DNA of 64,000 nt from the sequence record NC_007623.1. One strand, 5' to 3'. Positions within the stretch are counted from its first letter, which is position 1; each line of letters starts with the position of its first letter. Shown piece by piece: positions 1,894-47,818 of the stretch. The notes under the pieces are model-generated. The model made no database searches, had not been told where the DNA came from, and was given only the letters and a program-made list of their open reading frames with translations. The position numbers were made by a program, and so were the translations under genes.

Positions 1894-2298
1894 ATGTACA
1901 ACGTTATCGCAAATGCGGTGCTTCTGACCACATATGCTGTAATCGTGCTGCTAGTTGTTCAGCGCTATCTAGAAGCTAAGGGTATGCGTTACTCCATTAA
2001 GCGAATAGAGAACGGCCGTATTTTTAGCTTCTCGTTAGGGGTATACGCAGGGAAGATACGGATCCTGCATTCTCCGGACTGTACAGACCCGATCTTCAAA
2101 CGCCGTTATGATGGATGGGAAGTGACCTTTCCTGAACACTTTACGGAAGAGCAGATGGACCATTACATCATGCACCACGAACCCTTTGGGGAACACAATG
2201 CGTCTCATTCGAAGGATTTTGTTGTCTTCAGAGAAGTCATGATTCGCAAGAACAATGAGGTTTCGTGCGTAGATGGGAATATCTTCTGCCAAGCGTAA
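1894..2298 (+). CDS. Hypothetical protein with N-terminal transmembrane helix
   Basis: GAGGA RBS; hydrophobic VIANAVLLTTYAVIVLLVV. Confidence 0.65.
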   Translation: MYNVIANAVLLTTYAVIVLLVVQRYLEAKGMRYSIKRIENGRIFSFSLGVYAGKIRILHSPDCTDPIFKRRYDGWEVTFPEHFTEEQMDHYIMHHEPFGEHNASHSKDFVVFREVMIRKNNEVSCVDGNIFCQA

Positions 2299-2311
2299 TG
2301 AACCCATACAG

Positions 2312-2345
2312 TACCCTCCCTACCCCGCAAAGGGTAGGGAGGGTA
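2312..2345. terminator. Hairpin between convergent genes (probable bidirectional terminator)
   Basis: 14-bp stem TACCCTCCCTACCC/GGGTAGGGAGGGTA, 6-nt loop; T-run shortly downstream. Confidence 0.7.
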
Positions 2346-2364
2346 TGCAGTACACCTTTTTTGT

Positions 2365-3273
2365 TTAACCCATGTACAACTGACCGGCAGTGCCGTCCAC
2401 TTGGGCTTTCTGATCGATCATCCGTTCGATGGTACCGGATGGCGACGAGGTGACAGCCGCAGAACGCTGTTTGAAGCCCGGAGGGGCAGCAATGGCATCC
2501 GGGTTGTACAGCGGAAGGAGTTTCAACATCTGACGAGCAATCTGTTTCACAGCCAGGGTGTCGAATTCCACCAAACCGGTGAACTCCATGGTGATCTGAC
2601 GGATTGCGCCTTCTTCGCTCTTGTTACGTTTGATTTCAATCGGAACAGAGGTACGGGGCATCATACCAACCACCAAGGCAGCGTGAGCAATGTCCTTCAT
2701 GGTGTGGGTGGGTTCGAAGTAGATGCACGAGACCGATACTTCATCGATCAGCATGTCACCCGGATTATCCAGGATGACAATCTTGGCGTTCAGGACTTCC
2801 GAATCCATGACCAGCCATTGTTGCCAGACCTTGAACATCTTGGTGAACACTTCACCGATGCAATCGTAACCAGTATGCGTGACTTGACCCATCGAACGGG
2901 TAGCGCCCGACGGAATGGAGAGTACGTGACCCGTCCATTCCATTTGGGCGAACTGAACTTCAGTCATGTCACGGAGACCTTCGAACGACTGAGAACGGTT
3001 TTCAAACCACGCCTTACACAGCGAATGCAACGCAGTGCCACCCGGCAGTCGGGAGAAGGCAGCAGGAGTCGAGAGGACAATACACCACCCCAGTTGACTG
3101 ACGTGAGGTTGTGCGCTGACATACTCGAAGACGTTACCAGCCCAACCGTACATACCCCCGAATTGGGCGTTAATAACCGGACGGTTTTGCAGGTCCAGAG
3201 CCCGTACGAAGGGATCGGACTTCGGGAGTAGGGTCGTACTGGACCGATGAGGGAAGTTCGTTTCATTAGCCAT
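2365..3273 (-). CDS. Tail tube protein (phiKZ gp30-like)
   Basis: About 300 aa, directly downstream of the sheath gene; phiKZ-type order sheath-tube. Confidence 0.75.
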   Translation of the reverse strand: MANETNFPHRSSTTLLPKSDPFVRALDLQNRPVINAQFGGMYGWAGNVFEYVSAQPHVSQLGWCIVLSTPAAFSRLPGGTALHSLCKAWFENRSQSFEGLRDMTEVQFAQMEWTGHVLSIPSGATRSMGQVTHTGYDCIGEVFTKMFKVWQQWLVMDSEVLNAKIVILDNPGDMLIDEVSVSCIYFEPTHTMKDIAHAALVVGMMPRTSVPIEIKRNKSEEGAIRQITMEFTGLVEFDTLAVKQIARQMLKLLPLYNPDAIAAPPGFKQRSAAVTSSPSGTIERMIDQKAQVDGTAGQLYMG

Positions 3274-3283
3274 CTTTCATTCC

Positions 3284-5452
3284 TCAGGCCGCAGTAGTGG
3301 CCAGATCCTGTTGGTTGTAAGCGTAGAGATCGAATTCCATCATGTACTTGGCTTTGTTAAACCAAGCGTGGAGAATCACACGCAGTTTCGCACGGGATCC
3401 GAGCGTTCCAGTTTCGTAGAACGTTTCTGCGACGATGTTGGAGACTTCACCCCCTACTGCGTTACGGCACGCGCTCTCGATCTCGTCTTTCATGATGGAG
3501 GCGTAGTTATCTGCGGTGATGGTACGGTCACCACAAACGATGCGCCATTGATCCGCGGAGATCTTCTCCATCGCCACGCACAGGAACGGGTTAGCCAGGT
3601 CCTTGAGGACCGAGTCGGGGTTCGGGTGAATGGTGGGGAGGCCCGGACGGTACGTTTGAACGTTCCAGTCCCAAGGCTTCAGGGAGATATGGCCGTTGCT
3701 GAAGTTCTCAGCCGCCACTTCATCTTCTTCGAAGACGATGTTGGGGGAGTGCATCAGACGGAGTTTACGGTTATCCGCATGATCCGGTGCGTTCGGAGTG
3801 ACGATCAAACCGTCGATGTTACCTGCCCACAGCGCAAAGGCATAGGCCAGGTCGATGTTACCCGAGAAGTACCAGCCGGTCGGTTCATCGGTGACTTTCG
3901 CTTCGATGAGGTTCACAGCTGCACGGCAGGCTGGGGTACCCCACTTCTCAGACTCGACCGTCATGCGCAGTCGATTGGTGATCATTGCAGCCCGAGAATA
4001 GATCTCTTCGAGACTGTTCTTCTCACCCGGTCTCCAGACACAGGCGTCTGCCACAACCAGAATGTCCTTACGGGCACCCAGGAACTGTTCGGCGATATCT
4101 TTTACTTCTTGGGAATAACCAATATCCCAGAAGATCGATTGACGGTTACGGGTGGTGTCTTTCATTTCCACACCATTCACGTAACTGGTCAGATCCGCCA
4201 CCATCAGTTTGTTGGTGATTTCCCACGCCTGAAGGTGAGTGAGAGGACGCTCGGTGTTAGTCAGCAGACCAAAGGGATCGTTGACTGTCGGCTTGGTAAC
4301 GTAATCAGGTACCTTACCGTCCTTATCCAGGAACGGCGAAATACCGCCCGAGGATTTAATAGCGCCGCTCAGGTCCCACTTGATAACACCCGAGGTGGTG
4401 ATGGCGTAGTAAGGCGCGCCGTTGTGGTTGGTGCAGGTGAACGGGTTCATCTGCTTGTAGTACTCACCGGGAACACCGACTTCTACCAGGGTATCATTTT
4501 CCGGCTGTTCCACCACATACATCATCTGACACAGGGTGTCGATGTTGTCCTGGTAAACGACCAGGTCGTTGAACGGAGCCGGAACCGGGTTACCCGGGGC
4601 GTTCTTGTTACGACCAGTAAAGGAGCCGAAACCCGTTTGCAGGCTGTACTGAACGCCGTTGAGGGACACCGGGAACAGGGTGAACTTGGCACTTTCCTGT
4701 TGGAGGGTGGTTTTCGAATACACACGAGTCCCATCGACTCCATCGGTGAACTGACGGAGGTCGTAAGGGAAAGTCCCCGTGGACCGAACGAATTCGGAAA
4801 TGGAACGCCAATTCAGCGCGTCCGCACGGACACCCAGGTTAAGGCCCGACTTGTTGTATTCGTCACCGACACCAGCCACCCCTTCGAACAGGGGGAGTAC
4901 CAGGGTTTCAGGGGTATCACCACTGGCGGCGATGGTGCGGACTTCGAGCGCGCCGGGTTCTTTACCCGCTGCGGCATCATCGATTTTGATTTCGATGTTC
5001 AGACCGTTCGGGTAGGTTTTACCCGGGATCGGAATACGCTCGCCGTTTTCGTTATACTTCCAACGGCCGTTGGCATCTCGTTCGTAGGCCTGAACTTCCA
5101 CTTTCTGAACAAACGCAGAGAGCGAGGCTTTCGAGACCACTTCGTTGACCGAGAGGCGGCGAATGCCGATGGTATTCTGGCGACCCAGGGCGAGCGCCTG
5201 GATCAGGACCGACGTTGGGCCGTAGTAGGGCGACTTCTCGTCGAAAATGTCACCAAAGATCTTTTTGACGTCTTGGGGGGCTACCCATTGGGTGCCTGCT
5301 TTAGACGCCAGTTTTCCTTTGGGGAAGATACCGTGGATAACAGGAAGGTGGAGCGGGGTGGTTGGCGGGGACGTGTCATATTCTGGAATAGAGTTGTCCC
5401 GAATCCCACTAATGTCCACCTTTCCAGGGACGATTCTGTTGAAAACAGTCAT
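3284..5452 (-). CDS. Contractile tail sheath protein (phiKZ gp29-like)
   Basis: Start moved to ATG 5452 (GAGG RBS; MTVFNRIVPG); about 722 aa; sheath-like C-terminus; divergent from the gp28-27-26-terminase block as in phiKZ-like phages. Confidence 0.85.
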   Translation of the reverse strand: MTVFNRIVPGKVDISGIRDNSIPEYDTSPPTTPLHLPVIHGIFPKGKLASKAGTQWVAPQDVKKIFGDIFDEKSPYYGPTSVLIQALALGRQNTIGIRRLSVNEVVSKASLSAFVQKVEVQAYERDANGRWKYNENGERIPIPGKTYPNGLNIEIKIDDAAAGKEPGALEVRTIAASGDTPETLVLPLFEGVAGVGDEYNKSGLNLGVRADALNWRSISEFVRSTGTFPYDLRQFTDGVDGTRVYSKTTLQQESAKFTLFPVSLNGVQYSLQTGFGSFTGRNKNAPGNPVPAPFNDLVVYQDNIDTLCQMMYVVEQPENDTLVEVGVPGEYYKQMNPFTCTNHNGAPYYAITTSGVIKWDLSGAIKSSGGISPFLDKDGKVPDYVTKPTVNDPFGLLTNTERPLTHLQAWEITNKLMVADLTSYVNGVEMKDTTRNRQSIFWDIGYSQEVKDIAEQFLGARKDILVVADACVWRPGEKNSLEEIYSRAAMITNRLRMTVESEKWGTPACRAAVNLIEAKVTDEPTGWYFSGNIDLAYAFALWAGNIDGLIVTPNAPDHADNRKLRLMHSPNIVFEEDEVAAENFSNGHISLKPWDWNVQTYRPGLPTIHPNPDSVLKDLANPFLCVAMEKISADQWRIVCGDRTITADNYASIMKDEIESACRNAVGGEVSNIVAETFYETGTLGSRAKLRVILHAWFNKAKYMMEFDLYAYNQQDLATTAA

Positions 5453-5561
5453 GGCAACCTCGTGGGGGAAAAGTTTGAAGCAATCGTATGAACCCATTTT
5501 CAGGGCCGTACAGTGTAATAAGGCACTGTCACATAACATGTTATTTTAAGGAATATCTACC

Positions 5562-6440
5562 ATGCTGATCAATGCCTATGACACCACGGTCGGTAAAGTG
5601 ATCCGGGCGTCTCACCACGTGGACGAAGTCATTAAAACCCTTCATCTGACCAATAATCTGTCTCCCACTAAGAAAGACAAGGTGTACGTTATTACGCACG
5701 CCACCAGCGTTCCATTTTCAACCATTGCTTTTCCGATTACCTTGCAGACCCATACCCGCCAAACCATTACGGTGTATGACGAACGTCCGTACCGGGATAA
5801 ACAGAACCGAGTCACGAACCAGAATGACCTGACCATTATGCGACTGGCGGCGTTTCTACAGCAGGATGTTGCCGAGTTGAACTTCAGCCCGGTTAAGCTG
5901 AGTCGCAATATGGTAACCAAAGCCTTTAGTGACGCGTTAACCCAACGGTTAACGATGCGGGGTGGTTTGGATATCGTAGAGTCTTCGACCCTGAAGGTGT
6001 TGATTGGGTATTATGTGGTTAGTCTTCAAGAGAACCCGAACAATGACCTGGTCTTTGTGGTTGAGAATGTCCTTCGTAATGTGTACGGGATGGAAAAAGA
6101 CTTTGTATTGGGGGTCATTGCTGATCTCCCCCATCTGAGTAAGCTGGAAGACCTCCTCAGTGAGATTCGTAAGAATCCTGTGTTGTATAAACTCAAAGGG
6201 ATGGGTCTTAAGGACTTCATTGCTGTGGTGGGTGGATTGGCCTTTACGGGGCTGGGGAAACAGGTCTTTGAAGCTGCGTCTGAAGCACCTTGCTTGTTGA
6301 CGGCCTTTGTCTATGGCGCAGCACGTTTCAGGGCGCTGAATAAAACACCGCTGGGTATGGCATTGGATCCTAAATACAACAAAGGGATCCTGGATACCTT
6401 CCTTAAGAACATCGATTACACGTATGATCTCAACGGGTAA
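5562..6440 (+). CDS. Virion structural protein (phiKZ gp28 position)
   Basis: AAGGA RBS; 292 aa; synteny. Confidence 0.6.
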   Translation: MLINAYDTTVGKVIRASHHVDEVIKTLHLTNNLSPTKKDKVYVITHATSVPFSTIAFPITLQTHTRQTITVYDERPYRDKQNRVTNQNDLTIMRLAAFLQQDVAELNFSPVKLSRNMVTKAFSDALTQRLTMRGGLDIVESSTLKVLIGYYVVSLQENPNNDLVFVVENVLRNVYGMEKDFVLGVIADLPHLSKLEDLLSEIRKNPVLYKLKGMGLKDFIAVVGGLAFTGLGKQVFEAASEAPCLLTAFVYGAARFRALNKTPLGMALDPKYNKGILDTFLKNIDYTYDLNG

Positions 6441-36030: not shown

Positions 36031-36047
36031 TTTTAAACCTACATTAT
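36031..36047 (+). promoter_or_regulatory. Putative phage early promoter motif
   Basis: TTTTAAACCTACATTAT, 38 nt upstream of ATG 36086. Confidence 0.6.
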
Positions 36048-39124: not shown

Positions 39125-40561
39125 ATGCACGAAACCAATGAACTGAACAAACTGTACGAAGCGATGTGTTTGTCGTGGGGCGCGCAGGTTAAAGAACAGG
39201 GACGACTCGTCTTTATGATCGATGGGGAAGAATTCCCACTCCGTATTGATGGGATGACCCTCCACCTTCCGCTGAGCGAAGTCCTGGATGGGAACTGCGT
39301 GGATAAGGTCTTCTTCCACCCGGCCTGTGAAAACATCGTGTCGAAAGAAACGGAAGTGTTCAAGATCATCCGGCGGATGACCTGTATGAAACTGCTGGAT
39401 ACCTTCCGTCGTATTCCGATGGTGTTATTCACCGTTGCAGGCCATAAGCCCAAGAGTACCTGGAACCAACGTATCCACGACATGCTGGAGCCCCTTAAAG
39501 GTGCCAAGCGTGCGGTACGGGATGAACTCAACGCATTGTTCAGCCGTATGCATGTGGAAGTGGAAGAGAATGGGTTGGATAACCGTTTCATTCACTTCAA
39601 GGTATCTAAGGGCGGTGGTACCAGTAAGACCACGGGTCAACGGATCTATTACAAGACCCGTCCGGAGTTTCCGTTCTATACGGAAATCGTTCGTCGTCTG
39701 GCACGTTCGGATGGTCAATCGGATAACCAGACCATTGAAATCAATAACCACACGGTCTCCCGAGCGGCACTTCGTCTGGCCGCCCATATCTTCCAGAACG
39801 TCCTTCCGGCGGTAAACAGTCCCAGTGACTATGAGTTTGAATCGACTTCCCCGGTGGCGTCTCGTCTAGTGTCCTACATGGGGTGCTATGCGGAAATCGC
39901 AGATCAATTGAATAAGATCCAGAATACCTTCCGATCTGATTTCGATAAAGCCGGGTTGTACCCGATTGATCTGAGCTGGACGGAACGCCTGGAAGAACTA
40001 CCGGATATTTATCGCCAAGTCCCAGTACTGGATTACAACAGCCACAACACCCATGATGAAGTCCAGCATCAAGCAGTGAGTCGGAATGACATGGGTGGTC
40101 TGCTGTCGGTTACCAGTACCAACCAACAGGGTGTTTCTCAACATCAATCCCAACCGCAGCACGTTGCAGGAATGAGCGGGGACTATGACGTATCACCTCC
40201 GCAGATGCAAGCGGGAGACCGGTATGTCCGTACTGAGATCGATTACGTCGGTCAACGCGTTCTCCACCATGCGGTTAACCAAACCACCAATAACCCGGTC
40301 GTCTACATCTGTAGCCGTAAAGGGAACTTCCTGCAACGCTCTGAAACCAACATGATGCTCCAGCAAATGGGTATGTTGGGTGGGATGGGTGGTATGATGG
40401 GTGGAACGATGCTGGCCAACGGGATGGTTCAACTGCCGAACGGTATGATCGTGAATCCGCAGATGATGGGGGGTGTTTCGATGCCCACACCTACCGCCGC
40501 ACCGAGTGTATACCCGGACGCCGGTATGGGGTTTGACCTGGGAGCCCCAGGTATCTTCTAA
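39125..40561 (+). CDS. Conserved hypothetical protein with Met/Gly/Gln-rich tail (phiKZ gp70 position)
   Basis: GAGGA RBS; 478 aa; low-complexity C-terminus. Confidence 0.75.
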   Translation: MHETNELNKLYEAMCLSWGAQVKEQGRLVFMIDGEEFPLRIDGMTLHLPLSEVLDGNCVDKVFFHPACENIVSKETEVFKIIRRMTCMKLLDTFRRIPMVLFTVAGHKPKSTWNQRIHDMLEPLKGAKRAVRDELNALFSRMHVEVEENGLDNRFIHFKVSKGGGTSKTTGQRIYYKTRPEFPFYTEIVRRLARSDGQSDNQTIEINNHTVSRAALRLAAHIFQNVLPAVNSPSDYEFESTSPVASRLVSYMGCYAEIADQLNKIQNTFRSDFDKAGLYPIDLSWTERLEELPDIYRQVPVLDYNSHNTHDEVQHQAVSRNDMGGLLSVTSTNQQGVSQHQSQPQHVAGMSGDYDVSPPQMQAGDRYVRTEIDYVGQRVLHHAVNQTTNNPVVYICSRKGNFLQRSETNMMLQQMGMLGGMGGMMGGTMLANGMVQLPNGMIVNPQMMGGVSMPTPTAAPSVYPDAGMGFDLGAPGIF

Positions 40562-40577
40562 GCAACAATAACCTTAC

Positions 40578-40609
40578 CAGTACCTAGCGGGATATCCCGC
40601 TAGGTACTG
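40578..40609. terminator. 32-bp perfect palindrome between convergent genes
   Basis: CAGTACCTAGCGGGAT ATCCCGCTAGGTACTG. Confidence 0.65.
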
Positions 40610-40636
40610 TGTTTTCTCTATTTTATTCCAGTATTT

Positions 40637-40966
40637 TTACGCTTGGGTCGTATTACTACGTGCAACGGCCTGGGTCAAATGGGCCTCGTCAATTATCTTG
40701 TAACTTTGCATGCCCGCACAATCCATAAAGGGATCTTCAATCCCATTCAGATAGGCGGTGACCCACAGCATATGGTTTTCAACCCCTTGAACCCTCAGGA
40801 ACCGATAGAAGTCATACCGATAGGCATACAGTTGTGCGTGAGAGACGATTGGAATCTCCTGGGTTTGACGGAGGAGTATTTCCCGTTCGGACCGCACCAA
40901 GACTTTGAACCGTTCAGTAAAGAAGAAATCACGTCCTTCACTGAAGTTAACAATAGACAGTGGCAT
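40637..40966 (-). CDS. Small protein with LysM-like/T4 gp53-like motif
   Basis: AAGGA RBS; LWVTAYLNGIEDP resembles the W..A..N.I.DP LysM pattern. Confidence 0.55.
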   Translation of the reverse strand: MPLSIVNFSEGRDFFFTERFKVLVRSEREILLRQTQEIPIVSHAQLYAYRYDFYRFLRVQGVENHMLWVTAYLNGIEDPFMDCAGMQSYKIIDEAHLTQAVARSNTTQA

Positions 40967-40997
40967 GGAGAAGATCCTTATCGATGCAGCTAACCAT

Positions 40998-41014
40998 TTT
41001 TGAACCTATATTAT
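40998..41014 (+). promoter_or_regulatory. Putative phage early promoter motif upstream of tnpB
   Basis: TTTTGAACCTATATTAT; 15/17 identical to the motif at 36031. Confidence 0.6.
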
Positions 41015-41044
41015 TTCTGTGACCCGACATAAGGAATTATCCCA

Positions 41045-42187
41045 ATGGAATACTTAACGACCCAACGAAGTCGATTGTATCCCAACCTGGATACTCGTCT
41101 GGTATTAAACAAAACCATAGGGTGTTCACGTTTCATATGGAACGCTCTACTGGGTAATCATAAGGAAGAATACGGTCTTTGGGTAGAGGATCCAGAAACT
41201 CATCCTAAACCGAGTTGTTCTTTAAGTTCCTTTAATCAAAAGCTGAACGAACTTAAAGTTGAATACCCCTGGTTAAATGAGGTCAGTTCTGTTGCTTTAC
41301 AACAAACAGTTCTTCATTTAACCAAGGCTTTTAGTGAGTTCTTCCAGGGTATTCATGGTTATCCAAAATTTAAATCTAAACGAGATCCCGGTGGATTTAA
41401 CCTCAGTAGTGCAGCGGGAACTTTAGCCAAGGACGGCAAGATTCGAATCCCCAAGATAAAGGGATACACCACCTGTCGACCTAAGCTCCCGTTGGATCAG
41501 GAAATTAGGAACTACAGCATTGTCAAAGACCGGGTTGGGAATTACTTTGTCAATTGCTTAGTAACTAAACCTTGTCTACCGAATACGGCTAAAGGTCAAG
41601 GACTGGTGGGGGTTGATCTGGGGATTAAATCCTTAGCGGTGGCGAAGCGGTCTACAGGTGAAATCTTTACCTTGGAGAATCCTCGAACCTACATGAAGTA
41701 CCACCGTAGACGTGTACGACTTCAACGGCGATTAGCCAAGAAACAGAAAGGGAGTCAAAACCGTAATAAAGCTAGAATTAAACTGGCCAAACTAGAACGT
41801 AAGGTCGGCAATATTCGCAAGAACACCCTGGATACCTTCACCTCTAAACTGATTAGCGAAAACCAAGTAATCAGTATTGAGGATTTGAATGTTAAAGGGA
41901 TGCTGAAAAACAGCCGGTTGGCTAAGCATATCCAAGACTGTGGATTTAGCACCCTCCGGAGGATGTTGGAACACAAGGCTAAACGGTATGAATCACCGGT
42001 TATTATTAGCCTGGTCCATCGATTTTACCCCAGCACCCAGTGTTGTTCAGCGTGTGGTATTAAACGTGAGATCAAACTGACCCTTAATGACCGGGAATGG
42101 ACCTGCGCTGAATGCGGGACCTCTCACGACAGAGACATCAATGCTGCAACGAATATCCTGTATGAAGGACTTCGGTTAGTGGTCTGA
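41045..42187 (+). CDS. tnpB: TnpB RNA-guided endonuclease (IS200/IS605 family), no tnpA
   Basis: N-terminal RLYP...GCSRFIWN; RuvC-I GVDLG, RuvC-II IEDL, Zn finger CSACG...CAECG, RuvC-III DRDINAA, all intact. Confidence 0.93.
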   Translation: MEYLTTQRSRLYPNLDTRLVLNKTIGCSRFIWNALLGNHKEEYGLWVEDPETHPKPSCSLSSFNQKLNELKVEYPWLNEVSSVALQQTVLHLTKAFSEFFQGIHGYPKFKSKRDPGGFNLSSAAGTLAKDGKIRIPKIKGYTTCRPKLPLDQEIRNYSIVKDRVGNYFVNCLVTKPCLPNTAKGQGLVGVDLGIKSLAVAKRSTGEIFTLENPRTYMKYHRRRVRLQRRLAKKQKGSQNRNKARIKLAKLERKVGNIRKNTLDTFTSKLISENQVISIEDLNVKGMLKNSRLAKHIQDCGFSTLRRMLEHKAKRYESPVIISLVHRFYPSTQCCSACGIKREIKLTLNDREWTCAECGTSHDRDINAATNILYEGLRLVV

Positions 42188-42189
42188 TA

Positions 42190-42344
42190 GAAAATTTACT
42201 CTTTGGAGTAACTACCGAAGCCTACTCGGGATGTTAAGCCTGTGGAGCATCAGTGCGGTTAAGCTGAGCAATGAAGCAGGAAGTTTGAGGTTAAAACATT
42301 GGGATAAAGACAGTCTTAACTCATTATTGAAAAGACTGCTGTTG
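42190..42344 (+). ncRNA. Putative TnpB omega-RNA scaffold plus guide
   Basis: AAGCCTGTGGAG (42236-42247) and ATGAAGCAGGAA (42271-42282), typical of IS605-family right ends; candidate end TCAT at 42321-42324; boundaries uncertain. Confidence 0.6.
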
Positions 42345-42361
42345 ACTGTAATGGAGCCGTT

Positions 42362-44668
42362 ATGAGTAAAGAAAAATTGAATCAGGACCTGAAAGGTGTA
42401 AGTAGTGAGATCCGTGCCGCACTGGGTGCAGAGGATACGGATCTTACCCCTGACAGTGCAGCGGGTCAATTCCTCCAGGAAGTCCGTTACAAGTATCCCT
42501 GCGGGGAGAATCAAATCCATCCTGCTTTAGTGGGTGTCAGCAGTAACCTGATTCTCTTCCCGCACGAAGCCTCCGCGGGTCGTCTCTATATGGCGGGTAA
42601 CATGATCCCTAAATCCGTGCCGACCGAAGGAGCGGGTGAACGGATGATGGTAACCGGGTACGAATTTGAGGAACATTACGGTGGAACGGCTCGTAAGGTC
42701 GAAGCCCCTGCGAATATGCTGGTGGAAGAGATCTTCTTCGTTCAGAGTCTGGTTCCGGGTAAGGATACGGATGACTGGAATTCGATTTACGTGGTCTTTA
42801 AGAACGACGAACAGAACGCCTACGACCTTCTGGAGCTACCTCGGTATAACACCCATAACCACTACGTTGGGTTCGAATATAAATACGATAAAGAGAAACT
42901 CCGTAAGCTCCGTAAAGGTGCCACTTTCGCTAAAGGGACCGTCTTCGCTAAGAGTCCCCGTATCAGTGAGAATGGGGAATGGTGTTTTGCAATGCCGACC
43001 TTGGTAGCCGCCTATTCGGACCAAAGGACTGAGGAGGATGGCGTGCTTATCACCCGTTCCTATGCGGAACGTTCGGCTTGTATGTTCAAGCACGAGTTCA
43101 GCTATGAATGGAATGAGGATGAATGGATTCCTCTGATGCTGTACGGAACGGACGAGAACCCCCAACCGCTCCCTGAGTCGGGTGATAACATCCGTGAGGA
43201 TGGGATCGTCATGGGCTTCCGTCGCCGCATCAAAGAGAACGCGCTGGTTTCCCTGACCAAGAAGTCCCTACGAGAACCGGATCTGGTGTACGACAAGTTG
43301 TTCTATGCGCCGGTGGATGCGGTTGTGATGTCAGTCACTGTTCGGTCGGATCGGATGAAGAACCGGTCCAATAACCGGGGAACGGATTACATCGAACAAC
43401 ACCACAATGCCATGCTGGACCGCTATGAGAAACGCCAGAATGAAATGTGGAACAATGTGATCCGGTGGTACGAAGGGAAGATCGCTGCCAACCGCGGGGA
43501 AGACATTCCCATTACCTTTGACCTCGATACCTTCATTCGGAACGCGTATGGTAACTATACCCGCAATGGGTTGGGTCGTATTAACCCGTTGGCCCGAGTG
43601 GAACGGTGGGATAAACTGAAAGATTGGAACGTGACCATCGAACTGAAGGAACGGGTCAAAGGTCGTGTTAAATTCAAGTACGCGGGTTTGAACGGTGACA
43701 AAGGGGTGTGTGTACGGGTCATTGAAGACGACGAAGCTCCCACCTATCCGGATGGGACTCGGGCGGAGTTCATTAAAGATAACGTACCGGCGTTCCGTCG
43801 CCAGATCTTTTCGTTGCTCATGGAACTGAGTATCAACTATGTGAACATGAACGTTCAACGGGAAGTCAGACACCTACGGCTACAAGGGGATTATGAAGGC
43901 GCTTTCCAGGCGTTGATGACGTTCTATGAAACCGGTTTCCCTGAATTCAGTGAATTGGTTGCTCATGCGTTGGTTACGGAGGAGGAGAAACGTGAGCACG
44001 TCGACGATGTCTGTCGCCGGAAGATTTCCGTGCATGTGGTCAGTAACACGAAGTTGTATGGCGTGAACCTGATCAACGCCCTGCGTCGTCAATACCCGTA
44101 TAAGCCGCAGAAAGCCATTATCGTGAACGCACTGGGAGAACGGGTGGAAACCGAGAACCCTATCCTTATCAGCTGTCAGGACATTATGCTCCTGGATAAG
44201 TTTGGTACGGACATGAGTGCGCAGAGTATGCCGAAGGCTAACCTCTTTGGTATGCCAGCGAAGATGAACGAAGGCAGTAAATACGCCACCCCCATGAAAG
44301 ACAGTAATAACAAGAATACCGGTGAAACCGAAGGCCGGTTGCAAGTCAGTCACGCGGGCGGGCAGGAAATGATCAAGCAACTGGCTCTGGCGTATTCCCC
44401 CGAGAACCAGAAAAAAGCCTCCCAACGGGTTATTCGTGCGGATGATCCGTTTGAGATTCCTCGGTTGATTAAACCGGAGGAGTATTTGGGGAATCGGGCG
44501 TTGAAAATGGCGGTGGGAATGTTGTCGGATTCGGGTTATCGGCTGCGAGCTGAACTACCCAGTGATCGTCGGGAATATCCAACCTTTAACATGGATGAAA
44601 TCCCAGGGTTAGATGACGAGACCTTGAAGCAGCTTCAGTCATCCGAGAAACCCACTCAAGAACCTTAA
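42362..44668 (+). CDS. rpoB: nvRNAP beta subunit C-terminal part (phiKZ gp71-73-like)
   Basis: KYAGLNGDKGV (beta GxHGxKG motif), TEEDG, KNTGETE; uninterrupted here. Confidence 0.87.
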   Translation: MSKEKLNQDLKGVSSEIRAALGAEDTDLTPDSAAGQFLQEVRYKYPCGENQIHPALVGVSSNLILFPHEASAGRLYMAGNMIPKSVPTEGAGERMMVTGYEFEEHYGGTARKVEAPANMLVEEIFFVQSLVPGKDTDDWNSIYVVFKNDEQNAYDLLELPRYNTHNHYVGFEYKYDKEKLRKLRKGATFAKGTVFAKSPRISENGEWCFAMPTLVAAYSDQRTEEDGVLITRSYAERSACMFKHEFSYEWNEDEWIPLMLYGTDENPQPLPESGDNIREDGIVMGFRRRIKENALVSLTKKSLREPDLVYDKLFYAPVDAVVMSVTVRSDRMKNRSNNRGTDYIEQHHNAMLDRYEKRQNEMWNNVIRWYEGKIAANRGEDIPITFDLDTFIRNAYGNYTRNGLGRINPLARVERWDKLKDWNVTIELKERVKGRVKFKYAGLNGDKGVCVRVIEDDEAPTYPDGTRAEFIKDNVPAFRRQIFSLLMELSINYVNMNVQREVRHLRLQGDYEGAFQALMTFYETGFPEFSELVAHALVTEEEKREHVDDVCRRKISVHVVSNTKLYGVNLINALRRQYPYKPQKAIIVNALGERVETENPILISCQDIMLLDKFGTDMSAQSMPKANLFGMPAKMNEGSKYATPMKDSNNKNTGETEGRLQVSHAGGQEMIKQLALAYSPENQKKASQRVIRADDPFEIPRLIKPEEYLGNRALKMAVGMLSDSGYRLRAELPSDRREYPTFNMDEIPGLDDETLKQLQSSEKPTQEP

Positions 44669-44707: not shown

Positions 44708-47700
44708 ATGGTAATGAAGATCAAACTCCGTGAATGGGCTAATTTACCAGAAGAAACTGTTCTCCGTTGGTTAAACACCCGCCGGTGGGTGGAGGTCACG
44801 GATGACCTGGACCAAGTCGCTCTAACGGATACCTACGCTCTGATCATTACCTGGCATGGAATGATCATCCACCGGCATTATAACGATGTCCCCTATTCCA
44901 TTAAGGAGATGGTACCCAGTAACAAGGTGGAAGGGGGTGAAGACACCGTCTATAACGATGGAACCAACGCGACGCCTATTAACCAGTTCTTAAAGGTCAT
45001 TCTTCCTACGATTATTGACCCGGTGGAAGTGGACGGGATTAAACGGCTTATTCATATCTGGCAGAATAAGCTGAATAACCTGCTGGTGGTGATGAGTGAA
45101 CGTTACGTTATTTCAGCCACCGCTGAATCCGTAGCGGAGTTCATGGAAGATGAAGGGATCTCTGGAATACGGGACCGTGTCCTGAGCAAGGAGATTTCAA
45201 TTGATGAGGGTGAGCGGGAGTTTGCGGATTATGTCCGGACCGCTCATTCCATTGCCAACAACACCCTCACCCTGCTGTCGCGTACGGGCGGGGTGGCCAT
45301 TAACCAGGCGTATCAGAAGACGATCATCCGGGGTAAAGTCTTTGACCTGAACAACTCGATCATGCCGAATGCGATTACGGTTCCGTATGCGCATGGGATT
45401 ACCAACCTGGCTGATATGCTGGGTGAACGGAATGCAGCAGGTAAAGCCGGGGTTTTGTCTTCAAAGATAAAAATCCCTGGTGGATGGAAGACCATGGGTA
45501 ACATCCGGGTGGGTGATGAAGTCGTTACACCCGATGGAGGTACCGCTAAGGTGCTGGCAGTTCACCCACAAGGTGTAACCAAGGTTGTACGGGTGCACTT
45601 CAAAGACGGTCGATATACTGACGTTAGTCCAGATCACCTGTGGAAGGTTAGACGTCATCATTGGTGCAACGATAAAGCCATGGCTAAACTCACTCGGGAG
45701 GAAGTGGAAGAACGTGTATGGCGAGTCATCACCACCAATGAGTTGAAAGACTATATTGGTCTGTCAACTAAGGTATACGTCCAACTGATTGAACCTGAAA
45801 GAAATGCCGATAAACCCTTCAAAATTCACCCGTATGTGCTCGGTGTCTTGTTGGGGGATGGATGCATTAGTCAAAAGGCTGTGGATATCACCAAACCTTA
45901 TCAACAGCTATTCGATAAGGTCCAATCGCTATTGCCAGAACATTTGGAATGTGTTTGGCGACCCAACCGTAAAGGTGATGGAGAACCTAAAACGTTTGGG
46001 ATCCGTTTTAAAGATCGTCGGTCCGAACAGCACATCAACTGGCATATCCGTGATGGCCTGAAGGAACTGGGCTTGTATGGAATGCGGTCGTGGGGAAAAG
46101 TCATTCCCGAAGAATATCTTCACGGATCGGCTAAACAACGTTTGGAGCTCCTCCAAGGACTGTTGGACACAGACGGAACTGTGGACAAACACAAATCGGT
46201 TAGCTTTAGCTCTTCGTCTAAGTTACTCTCCCTCGGAGTGCAATACTTGGTCAGAAGCCTAGGGGGGATGGCACGTCTCCAAGAACGTACTCCCCACTAC
46301 ACCCACAATGGAGAAAAAAGGGAAGGTCGTACGGACTATCGGGTTTATATCCGATACCCTCGACCAGAAGAACTCTTCACCCTAGACCACAAACGGGAAC
46401 GTGCGGTCTCGCACCAGCATACGGAAACCCTGAGACTGCAAGTAACTCATATTGAAGAACGTCCTGATGAGGAGACACAATGCATTACGATCGATCATCC
46501 TGATCATCTGTACATTACAGACGACTTCATTGTCACCCACAACAGCCTAACCAATAACGGCAAGGCCCTGAAATCATCGGAATGGTTCCACCGGAAGGTA
46601 CACATCCTGTCCGCTGTGGTGGCGGATATCGATCATTTCATGGACTGTGGAACGACCACTACAGTGCCGATCCGAATTCCCAATATGCAAGCGGCAATGG
46701 CACTGTTGGGTAAATTCAGGGTAACCGATACAGGAGAATTAGAACTCATTGATCAAACCACGGTGTGGTCAATTAAGCCAGGGGAGTGGGTTAATATTCG
46801 TAGTGTGGCCTTCTGTAATCACTACAATAGTGCTTCACCCTGCCGGGTATGCTACGGGATGATGGCGAGCTCTATCCCGTATAACGTGATGATGAAGAAA
46901 GGGGCTGATGTCGGGATGTGGTGTACCACCTCGATCTGTAACCCCATCGGCCAGGGAATGCTCTCCACCAAGCATTTCATTAGGAATGCAACGACCCGTA
47001 AGTTCGTTCCTGCGACTAAGGATAAGAACGTTATCTATTCCAATGGTGACGATATTTTCCTGACTAAGGAACTCTGTGCACCGGGCACTGAATTGGTGCT
47101 CAAAGCCGATATTGTAAACATCCTCTCGGATATCCGTTCCTTGGATGTTCTGGACAACTTGAGCCTGGATAAACTCCCGTACTTCTCTGAAGTCACATTC
47201 CGCTATGAAGTCGAAGACATCATGATGGGGGGTAAAACCCTCCAGCAGCATGCGGCTTGTACCTCGGTGTCGTCTCGGAATGCCCGGTTCTCGTTGGAGT
47301 TCCTGAACTATCTCCTGAGTAAAGGTTGGGCGAACGAAGGTAAGAAACATATTACCGTTGATTTGAGTGAATGGAATACGCTCAGTCCTATCTTCACACT
47401 GCCGTATGTTCGTGAAGACTTGGACATGCACCGGGCTCGGGTAGAGAACTTCATCACGTTCAATAAACGCAATAACGCCTGGAGACAGCAGATCGTTACA
47501 CCCCGTCTCTTTGGTGAGGTCTTAGCGGAATACTGGGGATTGATCAACCAGGAAACGAAAGGGATTAACATCATCCATCCTGAGGTCTTGCTCTATTCCA
47601 CGTTGTGTCGGGATCCCATGCGCGGGGATTATTCCCTGGCGAATGGTAAAGGACCTAAGTATTTCGTGAACTTCCAGGAGTGTATCAAAGGCAGGGGGGC

Positions 47701-47818
47701 GGGTATGCTCATGATCTACGAGAACCAGCAAAATGTGCTAAGTGATCCTAAGACATTCCGTGTGGTAAACCGTCAGGGGAGTCCGCTGGAGTGCTTCTTT
47801 AGCTTAGCGGTGAGTTGA
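44708..47818 (+). CDS. rpoC: nvRNAP beta' C-terminal subunit (phiKZ gp74-like) with intein
   Basis: After intein removal: AAGK|SLTNNGKALKSSEWFHRK (bridge-helix region), DCGT, CRVCYG, QGMLSTKH (trigger loop). Confidence 0.88.
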   Translation: MVMKIKLREWANLPEETVLRWLNTRRWVEVTDDLDQVALTDTYALIITWHGMIIHRHYNDVPYSIKEMVPSNKVEGGEDTVYNDGTNATPINQFLKVILPTIIDPVEVDGIKRLIHIWQNKLNNLLVVMSERYVISATAESVAEFMEDEGISGIRDRVLSKEISIDEGEREFADYVRTAHSIANNTLTLLSRTGGVAINQAYQKTIIRGKVFDLNNSIMPNAITVPYAHGITNLADMLGERNAAGKAGVLSSKIKIPGGWKTMGNIRVGDEVVTPDGGTAKVLAVHPQGVTKVVRVHFKDGRYTDVSPDHLWKVRRHHWCNDKAMAKLTREEVEERVWRVITTNELKDYIGLSTKVYVQLIEPERNADKPFKIHPYVLGVLLGDGCISQKAVDITKPYQQLFDKVQSLLPEHLECVWRPNRKGDGEPKTFGIRFKDRRSEQHINWHIRDGLKELGLYGMRSWGKVIPEEYLHGSAKQRLELLQGLLDTDGTVDKHKSVSFSSSSKLLSLGVQYLVRSLGGMARLQERTPHYTHNGEKREGRTDYRVYIRYPRPEELFTLDHKRERAVSHQHTETLRLQVTHIEERPDEETQCITIDHPDHLYITDDFIVTHNSLTNNGKALKSSEWFHRKVHILSAVVADIDHFMDCGTTTTVPIRIPNMQAAMALLGKFRVTDTGELELIDQTTVWSIKPGEWVNIRSVAFCNHYNSASPCRVCYGMMASSIPYNVMMKKGADVGMWCTTSICNPIGQGMLSTKHFIRNATTRKFVPATKDKNVIYSNGDDIFLTKELCAPGTELVLKADIVNILSDIRSLDVLDNLSLDKLPYFSEVTFRYEVEDIMMGGKTLQQHAACTSVSSRNARFSLEFLNYLLSKGWANEGKKHITVDLSEWNTLSPIFTLPYVREDLDMHRARVENFITFNKRNNAWRQQIVTPRLFGEVLAEYWGLINQETKGINIIHPEVLLYSTLCRDPMRGDYSLANGKGPKYFVNFQECIKGRGAGMLMIYENQQNVLSDPKTFRVVNRQGSPLECFFSLAVS
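45446..46543 (+). mobile_element. Intein (366 aa, class-3-type, Ala1) with intact LAGLIDADG endonuclease
   Basis: Block B PDHLW, block C YVLGVLLGDG, block E LLQGLLDTDG, block F TQCITI, block G DFIVTHN then Ser. Confidence 0.92.

Follow-up and report, generated by a model that had tools for sequence, protein, structure and literature searches.

The DNA analysed here, a stretch of 64,000 nucleotides (nt) from record NC_007623.1 (the window), belongs to Pseudomonas phage EL (NC_007623 / AJ697969), whose record supplies the coordinates and is 100% identical to the window over the 5 kb around the element described below. The EL annotation places gp037, labelled 'transposase', 5' of gp038 and gp039, which encode RNA polymerase (RNAP) beta subunits, and of a helicase gene; gp038 is referred to below as rpoB. 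Three Pfam domains, HTH_OrfB_IS605 (E 5e-8), OrfB_IS605 (E 1e-22) and Cas12f1-like_TNB (E 1.5e-20), were detected in the gp037 product, all passing their curated cut-offs, and the protein could be aligned end to end with the ISDra2 TnpB structures 8EXA and 8H1J (E 6e-51). The RuvC triad is intact: D191 (in GVDLGIK), E279 (SIEDL) and D364 (HDRD) correspond to D191, E278 and D361 of ISDra2 and are invariant across an alignment of seven clade members. The EL protein is predicted to have nuclease activity. No tnpA (Y1/HUH transposase) gene was present in the flanks or among the neighbouring open reading frames (ORFs), and tnpB was found at this single site in the Elvirus genomes. Judged by its sequence, the element, running from 41018 to about 42303 or 42312, is of the IS200/IS605 type without TnpA, and consists of tnpB and an omega-RNA encoded in and after its 3' end.

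The nearest TnpB proteins are those of two related elements, L308 and L307 (61% and 59% identity to EL), followed at 51-54% identity by TnpBs from Miami-type jumbo phages of Klebsiella, Raoultella and Stenotrophomonas. Comparison within this clade delimited the omega-RNA. About 100 TnpB loci of bacterial or uncultivated-virus origin carry the motifs GTTAAGCCTGTGGAG (42233-42247) and GAAGCAGGAA (42273-42282) at the corresponding place beyond the stop codon. Among seven related phage elements, about 80% identity continues past the stop codon up to ...GAAGCAGGAAGTT, and the sequences are divergent beyond. Two helices are accompanied by compensatory changes among 13 clade members; a covariation of CCTG/CAGG to CTTG/CAAG pairs 42239-42242 with 42277-42280, so that CAGGAA belongs to the scaffold. 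An Rfam scan of 40000-43500 (E up to 1) returned no match.

The ends of the element are unusual. In canonical relatives the scaffold is followed by a hairpin of 25-30 nt (GCCCATTGG...CAATGGGTA) and the element ends with GTTCAC before the flank, whereas the phage clade has a tail of 18-27 nt in place of the terminal hairpin. For three Miami-type elements (ZK_P1b, Kp32_2 and BUCTxx100), empty sister alleles resume homology right after AAGAC(A); L307 and L308 end with ...AACCGGG, 20-22 nt past CAAGAA. The EL equivalents are ATTGGG ending at 42303 (21 nt past CAGGAA) and AAGACA ending at 42312, and the right end may lie at either, as in L307/L308 or as in the Miami-like elements, respectively. A CAGTCTT/AAGACTG stem is present in this region. 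No subterminal hairpin was present in the 27 nt of the left end.

The element lies just 3' of an early-type promoter motif. Its core, AACCTATATTAT at 41003-41014, has kin at 36036-36047 (AACCTACATTAT) and at a third site, 18637, and both sister motifs fall inside features of the EL record annotated as 'putative phage promoter' (36030-36048 and 18631-18649). Since the upstream gene is on the minus strand and a strong hairpin terminator (40578-40609) closes the upstream operon, a promoter of the RNAP operon is needed within 40967-41044. The stretch 40996-41017 is identical in the tnpB-less relatives, all six of which join the promoter to rpoB, and AACCTATATTATCC is kept 5' of the rpoB homologue in an outgroup contig; the outgroup leader was too diverged for alignment and hence for polarising the insertion. 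Early promoters of such phages consist of an AT-rich motif of about 10 nt centred near -10 (PMC7598289), and the transcription start would therefore fall about where the element begins. The motif also suggests early expression through the virion RNAP. No intrinsic terminator was seen between tnpB and rpoB, and a single transcript would cover tnpB, the omega-RNA and the RNAP genes.

Much of this layout had been proposed by an earlier model working from the letters alone (the sequence-only reading). Its solo TnpB with intact catalytic residues and no tnpA is borne out by Pfam, the ISDra2 alignment and the neighbouring ORFs; the omega-RNA motifs and the stem that it saw downstream are there, and its placement of the element between a native promoter-type motif and the RNAP beta gene agrees with the six relatives and the outgroup. 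Its distances were exact: 30 nt from TTAT (ending at 41014) to the tnpB ATG, 37 nt from TCAT (ending at 42324) to the rpoB ATG at 42362, and a 38-nt leader after the sister motif at 36036-36047.

Table 1. Features in and around the gp037 element (window positions).
Feature	Position	Strand	Basis or remark
Conserved gene of 109 amino acids, diverging from the promoter region	40637..40966	-	outgroup homology
Early-type promoter motif ATTTTTGAACCTATATTAT (core 41003-41014), then TTC	40996..41017	+	native to the RNAP operon, outside the element
Element left end plus leader, TGTGACCCGACATAAGGAATTATCCCA, which includes Shine-Dalgarno AAGGAA	41018..41044	+	first bases missing from tnpB-less alleles
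tnpB (gp037), RNA-guided RuvC nuclease (predicted), IS200/IS605 family, 380 amino acids	41045..42187	+	Pfam, structure alignment
Omega-RNA scaffold, overlapping the last ~130 nt of tnpB, ending ...GAAGCAGGAAGTT	42057..42285	+	clade conservation, compensatory changes
Right-end tail TGAGGTTAAAAC ATTGGG ATAAAGACA, replacing the canonical hairpin	42286..42312	+	relatives compared
Flank encoding the putative guide; start at 42304 or 42313 uncertain	42304..42332	+	comparison with tnpB-less alleles
gp038, non-virion RNAP beta-type subunit, first operon gene	42362..44668	+	3' of the element

The Elvirus sample comprised three genomes with the element (EL, phiRU and IR-QUMS-PaBa1) and six without (MIZ-Pa99, GXNNE2, GXNNA8, HHBS8_1, HHBS47_1 and vB_PQ1). 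The vB_PQ1 record (PQ516283.1) has 488 coding sequences in 184 kb, with many fragmented small ORFs and 'CRISPR' repeats annotated inside the RNAP genes, and looks like an error-rich assembly. All Elvirus alleles agree up to CTATATTAT(C)TTC. The tnpB-less alleles continue with (A/G)GGAATGAG(G)TT...AGAC(Y)/AAAAC...GTCTTTATTGAAAAG... and rejoin EL at about 42321, giving a leader of 63-64 nt from TTAT to the rpoB ATG. The extra bases of MIZ-Pa99, CAGGAA-TGAGGTTAAAAC, are identical to EL 42277-42297 at 18 of 18 positions except for a 3-nt gap, a score reached by none of 2000 shuffles, and GXNNE2 and the HHBS phages retain AAGACNGTCTT. Because CAGG is an arm of a scaffold helix, we read the tnpB-less alleles as internal deletions, in which 3-4 nt remain from the start of the left end and about 20 nt from the omega-RNA and right-end tail, and not as sites that were never occupied.

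This result overturned several details of the sequence-only reading. The right end had been placed at 42324, with an empty leader of 37 nt; the tnpB-less leader is longer, and the bases that it has in excess are a piece of the omega-RNA scaffold. The guide had been given as TATTGAAAAG... (TATTGAAAAGACTGCTGTTG), with the remark that empty alleles not matching promoter plus guide would refute it, and the empty alleles indeed do not equal promoter plus guide. The 3' end of the promoter (TTAT) had been offered as the transposon-adjacent motif (TAM); a TTAT-type motif stands before TGAAAAG in filled and empty alleles alike, and a guide starting there therefore cannot separate self from target. An autonomous IS200/IS605 transposon was also considered and rejected, as tnpA and subterminal hairpins are missing and the tnpB-less alleles are not TAM plus right flank. 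A similar scar was sought in the empty allele of a Miami site, where similarity was limited to CAGG and AT-rich sequence, and this candidate was dropped as unproven. Upstream of the tnpB of another clade member (P0012; contig L309, 1100-1200), AATAAGACAG, which is similar to the AAGACA end of another element, stands ahead of a promoter-type motif, ATCTATATTATCTT, and could represent a second scar.

The three filled genomes point to recent movement of the element. Between EL and phiRU there are 943 differences in 50 kb (mean spacing 52 bp), with a single one within 40827-42421; the element shows 1 difference in 1396 bases, against 1 per 52 across the genome. The identical run at 41026-42422, the third longest in the 50 kb, falls together with the element. 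Two longer runs lie next to each other at 2103-6044, with one difference in 3.9 kb, and cover tail sheath and virion protein genes. The tnpB ORF has no nucleotide difference from phiRU and three from IR-QUMS, all synonymous, while the flanks are 1.4-3% different. At the flank positions 40802-40826 and 42437-42441, EL carries the MIZ/GXNN type of allele, and phiRU and IR-QUMS the HHBS type; all four combinations of element and flank therefore exist. Thus, as is typical of homing elements, the unit is present or absent at one locus, is younger than the sequence around it and occurs with more than one flank haplotype. This pattern fits a unit that was recently copied between backgrounds, as homing would do.

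To date, all known hosts of this TnpB clade are RNAP-encoding (phiKZ-like) jumbo phages. The Miami-type phages have an RNAP beta gene with 46% identity to that of EL. These phages hold six insertions at six sites, each in one genome only, and their elements are 69-83% identical to one another, against 95-98% for the phages; the elements resemble old, site-bound lineages more than fresh copies. A TAYATTAY motif occurs at most 75 nt upstream of tnpB in 8 of the 13 elements. Direct repeats of 7-12 nt have one copy starting precisely at the right end and another 5' of tnpB: comparing three Miami-type insertions with sister phages (L012, L013 and L016 with L184, L015 and L183) gave repeats measuring 12, 7-9 and 7 nt, of which the sisters have one copy each. 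In two of the Miami-type insertions (ZK_P1b and Kp32_2), the repeat is the promoter motif itself, which lies on both sides, so that tnpB and the downstream gene each keep a promoter copy. No direct repeat was seen at the EL copy. A candidate repeat at P0012, GAGGAAAT, was discarded, two similar ribosome-binding sites being the better explanation.

A relative of EL whose RNAP beta is 63% identical (L308, Logan SRR11814489_4828) carries a TnpB of 61% identity within the leader and initial codons of its homologue of gp33, the gene that in EL is served by the sister promoter at 36036; the RNAP site of this relative is empty, with the promoter kept. Its element (2640-4060) has an 8-nt repeat, TGTTAACG, on both sides, and the right end provides an AAGGAG ribosome-binding site and the G that rebuilds the GTG start of the interrupted gene.

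The explanation we favour, with a probability of about 0.5, is that gp037 belongs to a transposase-less TnpB/omega-RNA element, probably active even now, which recombination maintains among Elvirus phages, the tnpB-less alleles being scars that would escape cutting. The element would be selfish: during co-infection, TnpB and the omega-RNA would cut copies of the site that lack it, and recombination with the filled genome would then copy the element in, which would amount to homing without a transposase. In scar alleles a remnant separates the promoter TTAT from the downstream leader, and these alleles would therefore escape cutting. Homing is plausible, if unproven, and, like transcription from the promoter, nuclease activity, the TAM and the guide, it is inferred. 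Of the homing proposed by the sequence-only reading, recent horizontal spread is thus indicated; the end, TAM and guide that it had assigned are, by its own criterion, refuted by the tnpB-less alleles, and its empty site is not confirmed.

Several observations weigh against this explanation. Candidate guides were started at 42286 (after CAGGAAGTT), at 42304 or 42313 (after ATTGGG or AAGACA) and at 42325, the start of the sequence-only reading, and none of these definitions gave a TAM-adjacent match in MIZ-Pa99, HHBS8_1, HHBS47_1 or GXNNE2. The tnpB-less alleles part from each candidate after 4-12 nt and lack the 7 nt AACTCAT (42318-42324) of the EL flank. Present-day cleavage therefore cannot be argued from sequence in the sampled alleles, and the target that an element-free allele should carry under homing is not found in those sampled from Elvirus. 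Nine junctions yielded no consistent TAM. In empty alleles, the bases on the 5' side of the match to the right flank (GGACT, GTTCT, TCGAT, CAAAT and TTATG) share no consensus; TTAT, TCAT, TTAC or GCAT precedes the left end in about seven of the nine, but from L308 it is clear that an insertion does not have to adjoin the promoter. The low divergence of the element could also come from ordinary block recombination in mosaic phages, one other long identical tract (the tail sheath gene) exists between EL and phiRU, and the filled genomes number only three. In addition, the textbook IS605 mechanism accounts neither for the direct repeats of the clade nor for its missing right-end hairpin, and the repeats are the least conventional part of the picture. 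Wider searches added no alleles or targets: no second copy of any candidate guide occurs within the window, a 14-mer scan of IMG/VR for further clade members or Elvirus alleles gave chance matches only, and the flank pattern recovered only EL itself in IMG/VR and nothing in the JGI metagenomes.

The main rival is that gp037 is an inactive passenger, a stranded TnpB that cuts nothing, and that the pattern reflects one old insertion, a deletion and ordinary recombination of alleles. The missing tnpA, end hairpins and direct repeat of the EL copy, the lack of a cleavable target in known alleles and the generally mosaic flank haplotypes would all be expected of such a passenger. It accounts poorly for an intact ORF that retains its catalytic triad, for differences that are synonymous only, for a scaffold maintained clade-wide with compensatory changes and for an identical tract that coincides with the element, and we consider it possible but unlikely.

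A broader proposal concerns the clade as a whole, and we put it forward as speculative and doubtful. A TnpB lineage proper to RNAP-encoding jumbo phages would move without a transposase, RNA-guided cuts being made in the leaders of early genes and repair copying in a unit whose omega-RNA end is fixed and leaving direct repeats of 7-12 bp; promoters and ribosome-binding sites would be supplied or borrowed, so that essential early operons still work, and EL gp037 would be caught in a cycle of homing and escape with the scar alleles.

A co-opted function, such as processing of the tnpB-rpoB transcript, tuning of the RNAP operon or early cutting of a host sequence, seems quite improbable to us. 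An essential early operon does have the element in its leader, without a terminator ahead of rpoB, the L308 right end gives the downstream gene a Shine-Dalgarno sequence and a start codon, and early-gene leaders host clade members in eight of thirteen cases; however, six of the nine Elvirus genomes manage without the element, and each Miami-like insertion is confined to one genome. The inter-phage weapon of the sequence-only reading, with a guide against competing nucleus-forming phages instead of or besides the empty site, has in its favour only its likeness to the PhiPA3 intron endonuclease (cited in PMC13282480) and the early-promoter placement, and is very improbable, as 42278-42350 (73 nt of tail and flank that include all guide starts) had no match, and hence no target, outside Elvirus in 50,697 phage records (E up to 10) and the sampled tnpB-less Elvirus alleles diverge from the candidate guides after 4-12 nt with no adjacent TAM.

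The neighbouring genes were also re-examined. A search with gp038 matched 166 jumbo-phage records, and Erwinia phage RAY has a homologue of it labelled 'nvRNAP beta subunit 2', from which it follows that the operon encodes the non-virion polymerase. On the other side, the minus-strand product of 40637-40966 aligns with an outgroup phage ORF over its full length without gaps (44% identity, E 2e-34), while the frame of RefSeq gp036 (plus strand, 40679-40993) contains four stops in the outgroup; the gp036 call is probably a mis-call, the true gene lying on the minus strand. Within gp039 (44708-47818, plus strand; RNAP beta'-type, 1036 amino acids), a LAGLIDADG homing-endonuclease domain spans residues ~466-539. 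The outgroup homologue, of 671 amino acids, is without this domain, and some Elvirus records give gp039 as split or 'intein-containing'. It probably holds an intein, and the operon would then contain, besides the tnpB element, another selfish element. In phiKp_32 (LC768500.1, 27401-28687), no more than 57% of the length of the RNAP beta homologue matches EL gp038, in two separate places, which suggests an interrupted or split gene.

In bacterial chromosomes, TnpB cuts the site that its transposon has vacated and thereby keeps the transposon in place. In the literature searched, spread between co-infecting lytic phages by RNA-guided homing has been raised only as a possibility (PMC13565253). 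EL and its tnpB-less relatives share a laboratory host and differ at the locus, so that biased inheritance is directly testable. The polymerase operon whose leader the element occupies is required for the middle and late genes of a nucleus-forming phage, which raises the question of how this operon is expressed through a guide-RNA gene. Across the clade, the missing end hairpin, the direct repeats and the early-gene leaders suggest a non-textbook way of moving.

The annotation of gp037 dates from the EL genome publication and the biology of TnpB is already known; what is new here is the set of phage-specific variant features and a testable homing system. EL TnpB shares with ISDra2 TnpB (8EXA, 8H1J and 8BF8) its domain order, length, RuvC D-E-D triad and zinc ribbon, and both have an omega-RNA (reRNA) across the 3' end of the gene with GTTAAGCCTGTGGAG and GAAGCAGGAA in common. 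Unlike ISDra2, the EL element has no TnpA partner, carries an 18-27-nt type of tail in place of the right-end hairpin and GTTCAC/GGTTCAA end, and resides in a lytic jumbo phage, not in a bacterial chromosome. IS1341-type elements (TnpB-only IS200/IS605) likewise consist of a solo tnpB and omega-RNA. These elements keep ends recognisable by TnpA and are thought to be mobilised in trans, and peel-and-paste IS200/IS605 transposition makes no direct repeats; the EL left end, by contrast, is 27 nt long without a hairpin, and its clade relatives have direct repeats of 7-12 bp.

Among phages, 'non-restorative transposon homing' into co-infecting phages has been described as a concept (PMC13565253). 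Phage homing endonucleases (T4 SegF/Mob and the PhiPA3 gp210 intron endonuclease) resemble the EL element in their presence or absence at one locus, in being less diverged than their flanks and in their location beside RNA polymerase genes; they differ in that recognition by the EL element would be by an RNA guide, not a protein, and in that no cleavable target allele was found for it. Promoter-early stem-loop (PeSL) cassettes of T4-type phages are gene cassettes bounded by early-promoter motifs. The motif on both sides of ZK_P1b and Kp32_2 recalls them, although the right boundary in the TnpB clade is fixed to the omega-RNA end, which promoter recombination does not predict. TldR proteins, nuclease-dead TnpB relatives that act as RNA-guided repressors, likewise combine a phage-borne TnpB-family protein with a guide RNA; gp037 is not a domesticated repressor of this type because its RuvC residues are intact.

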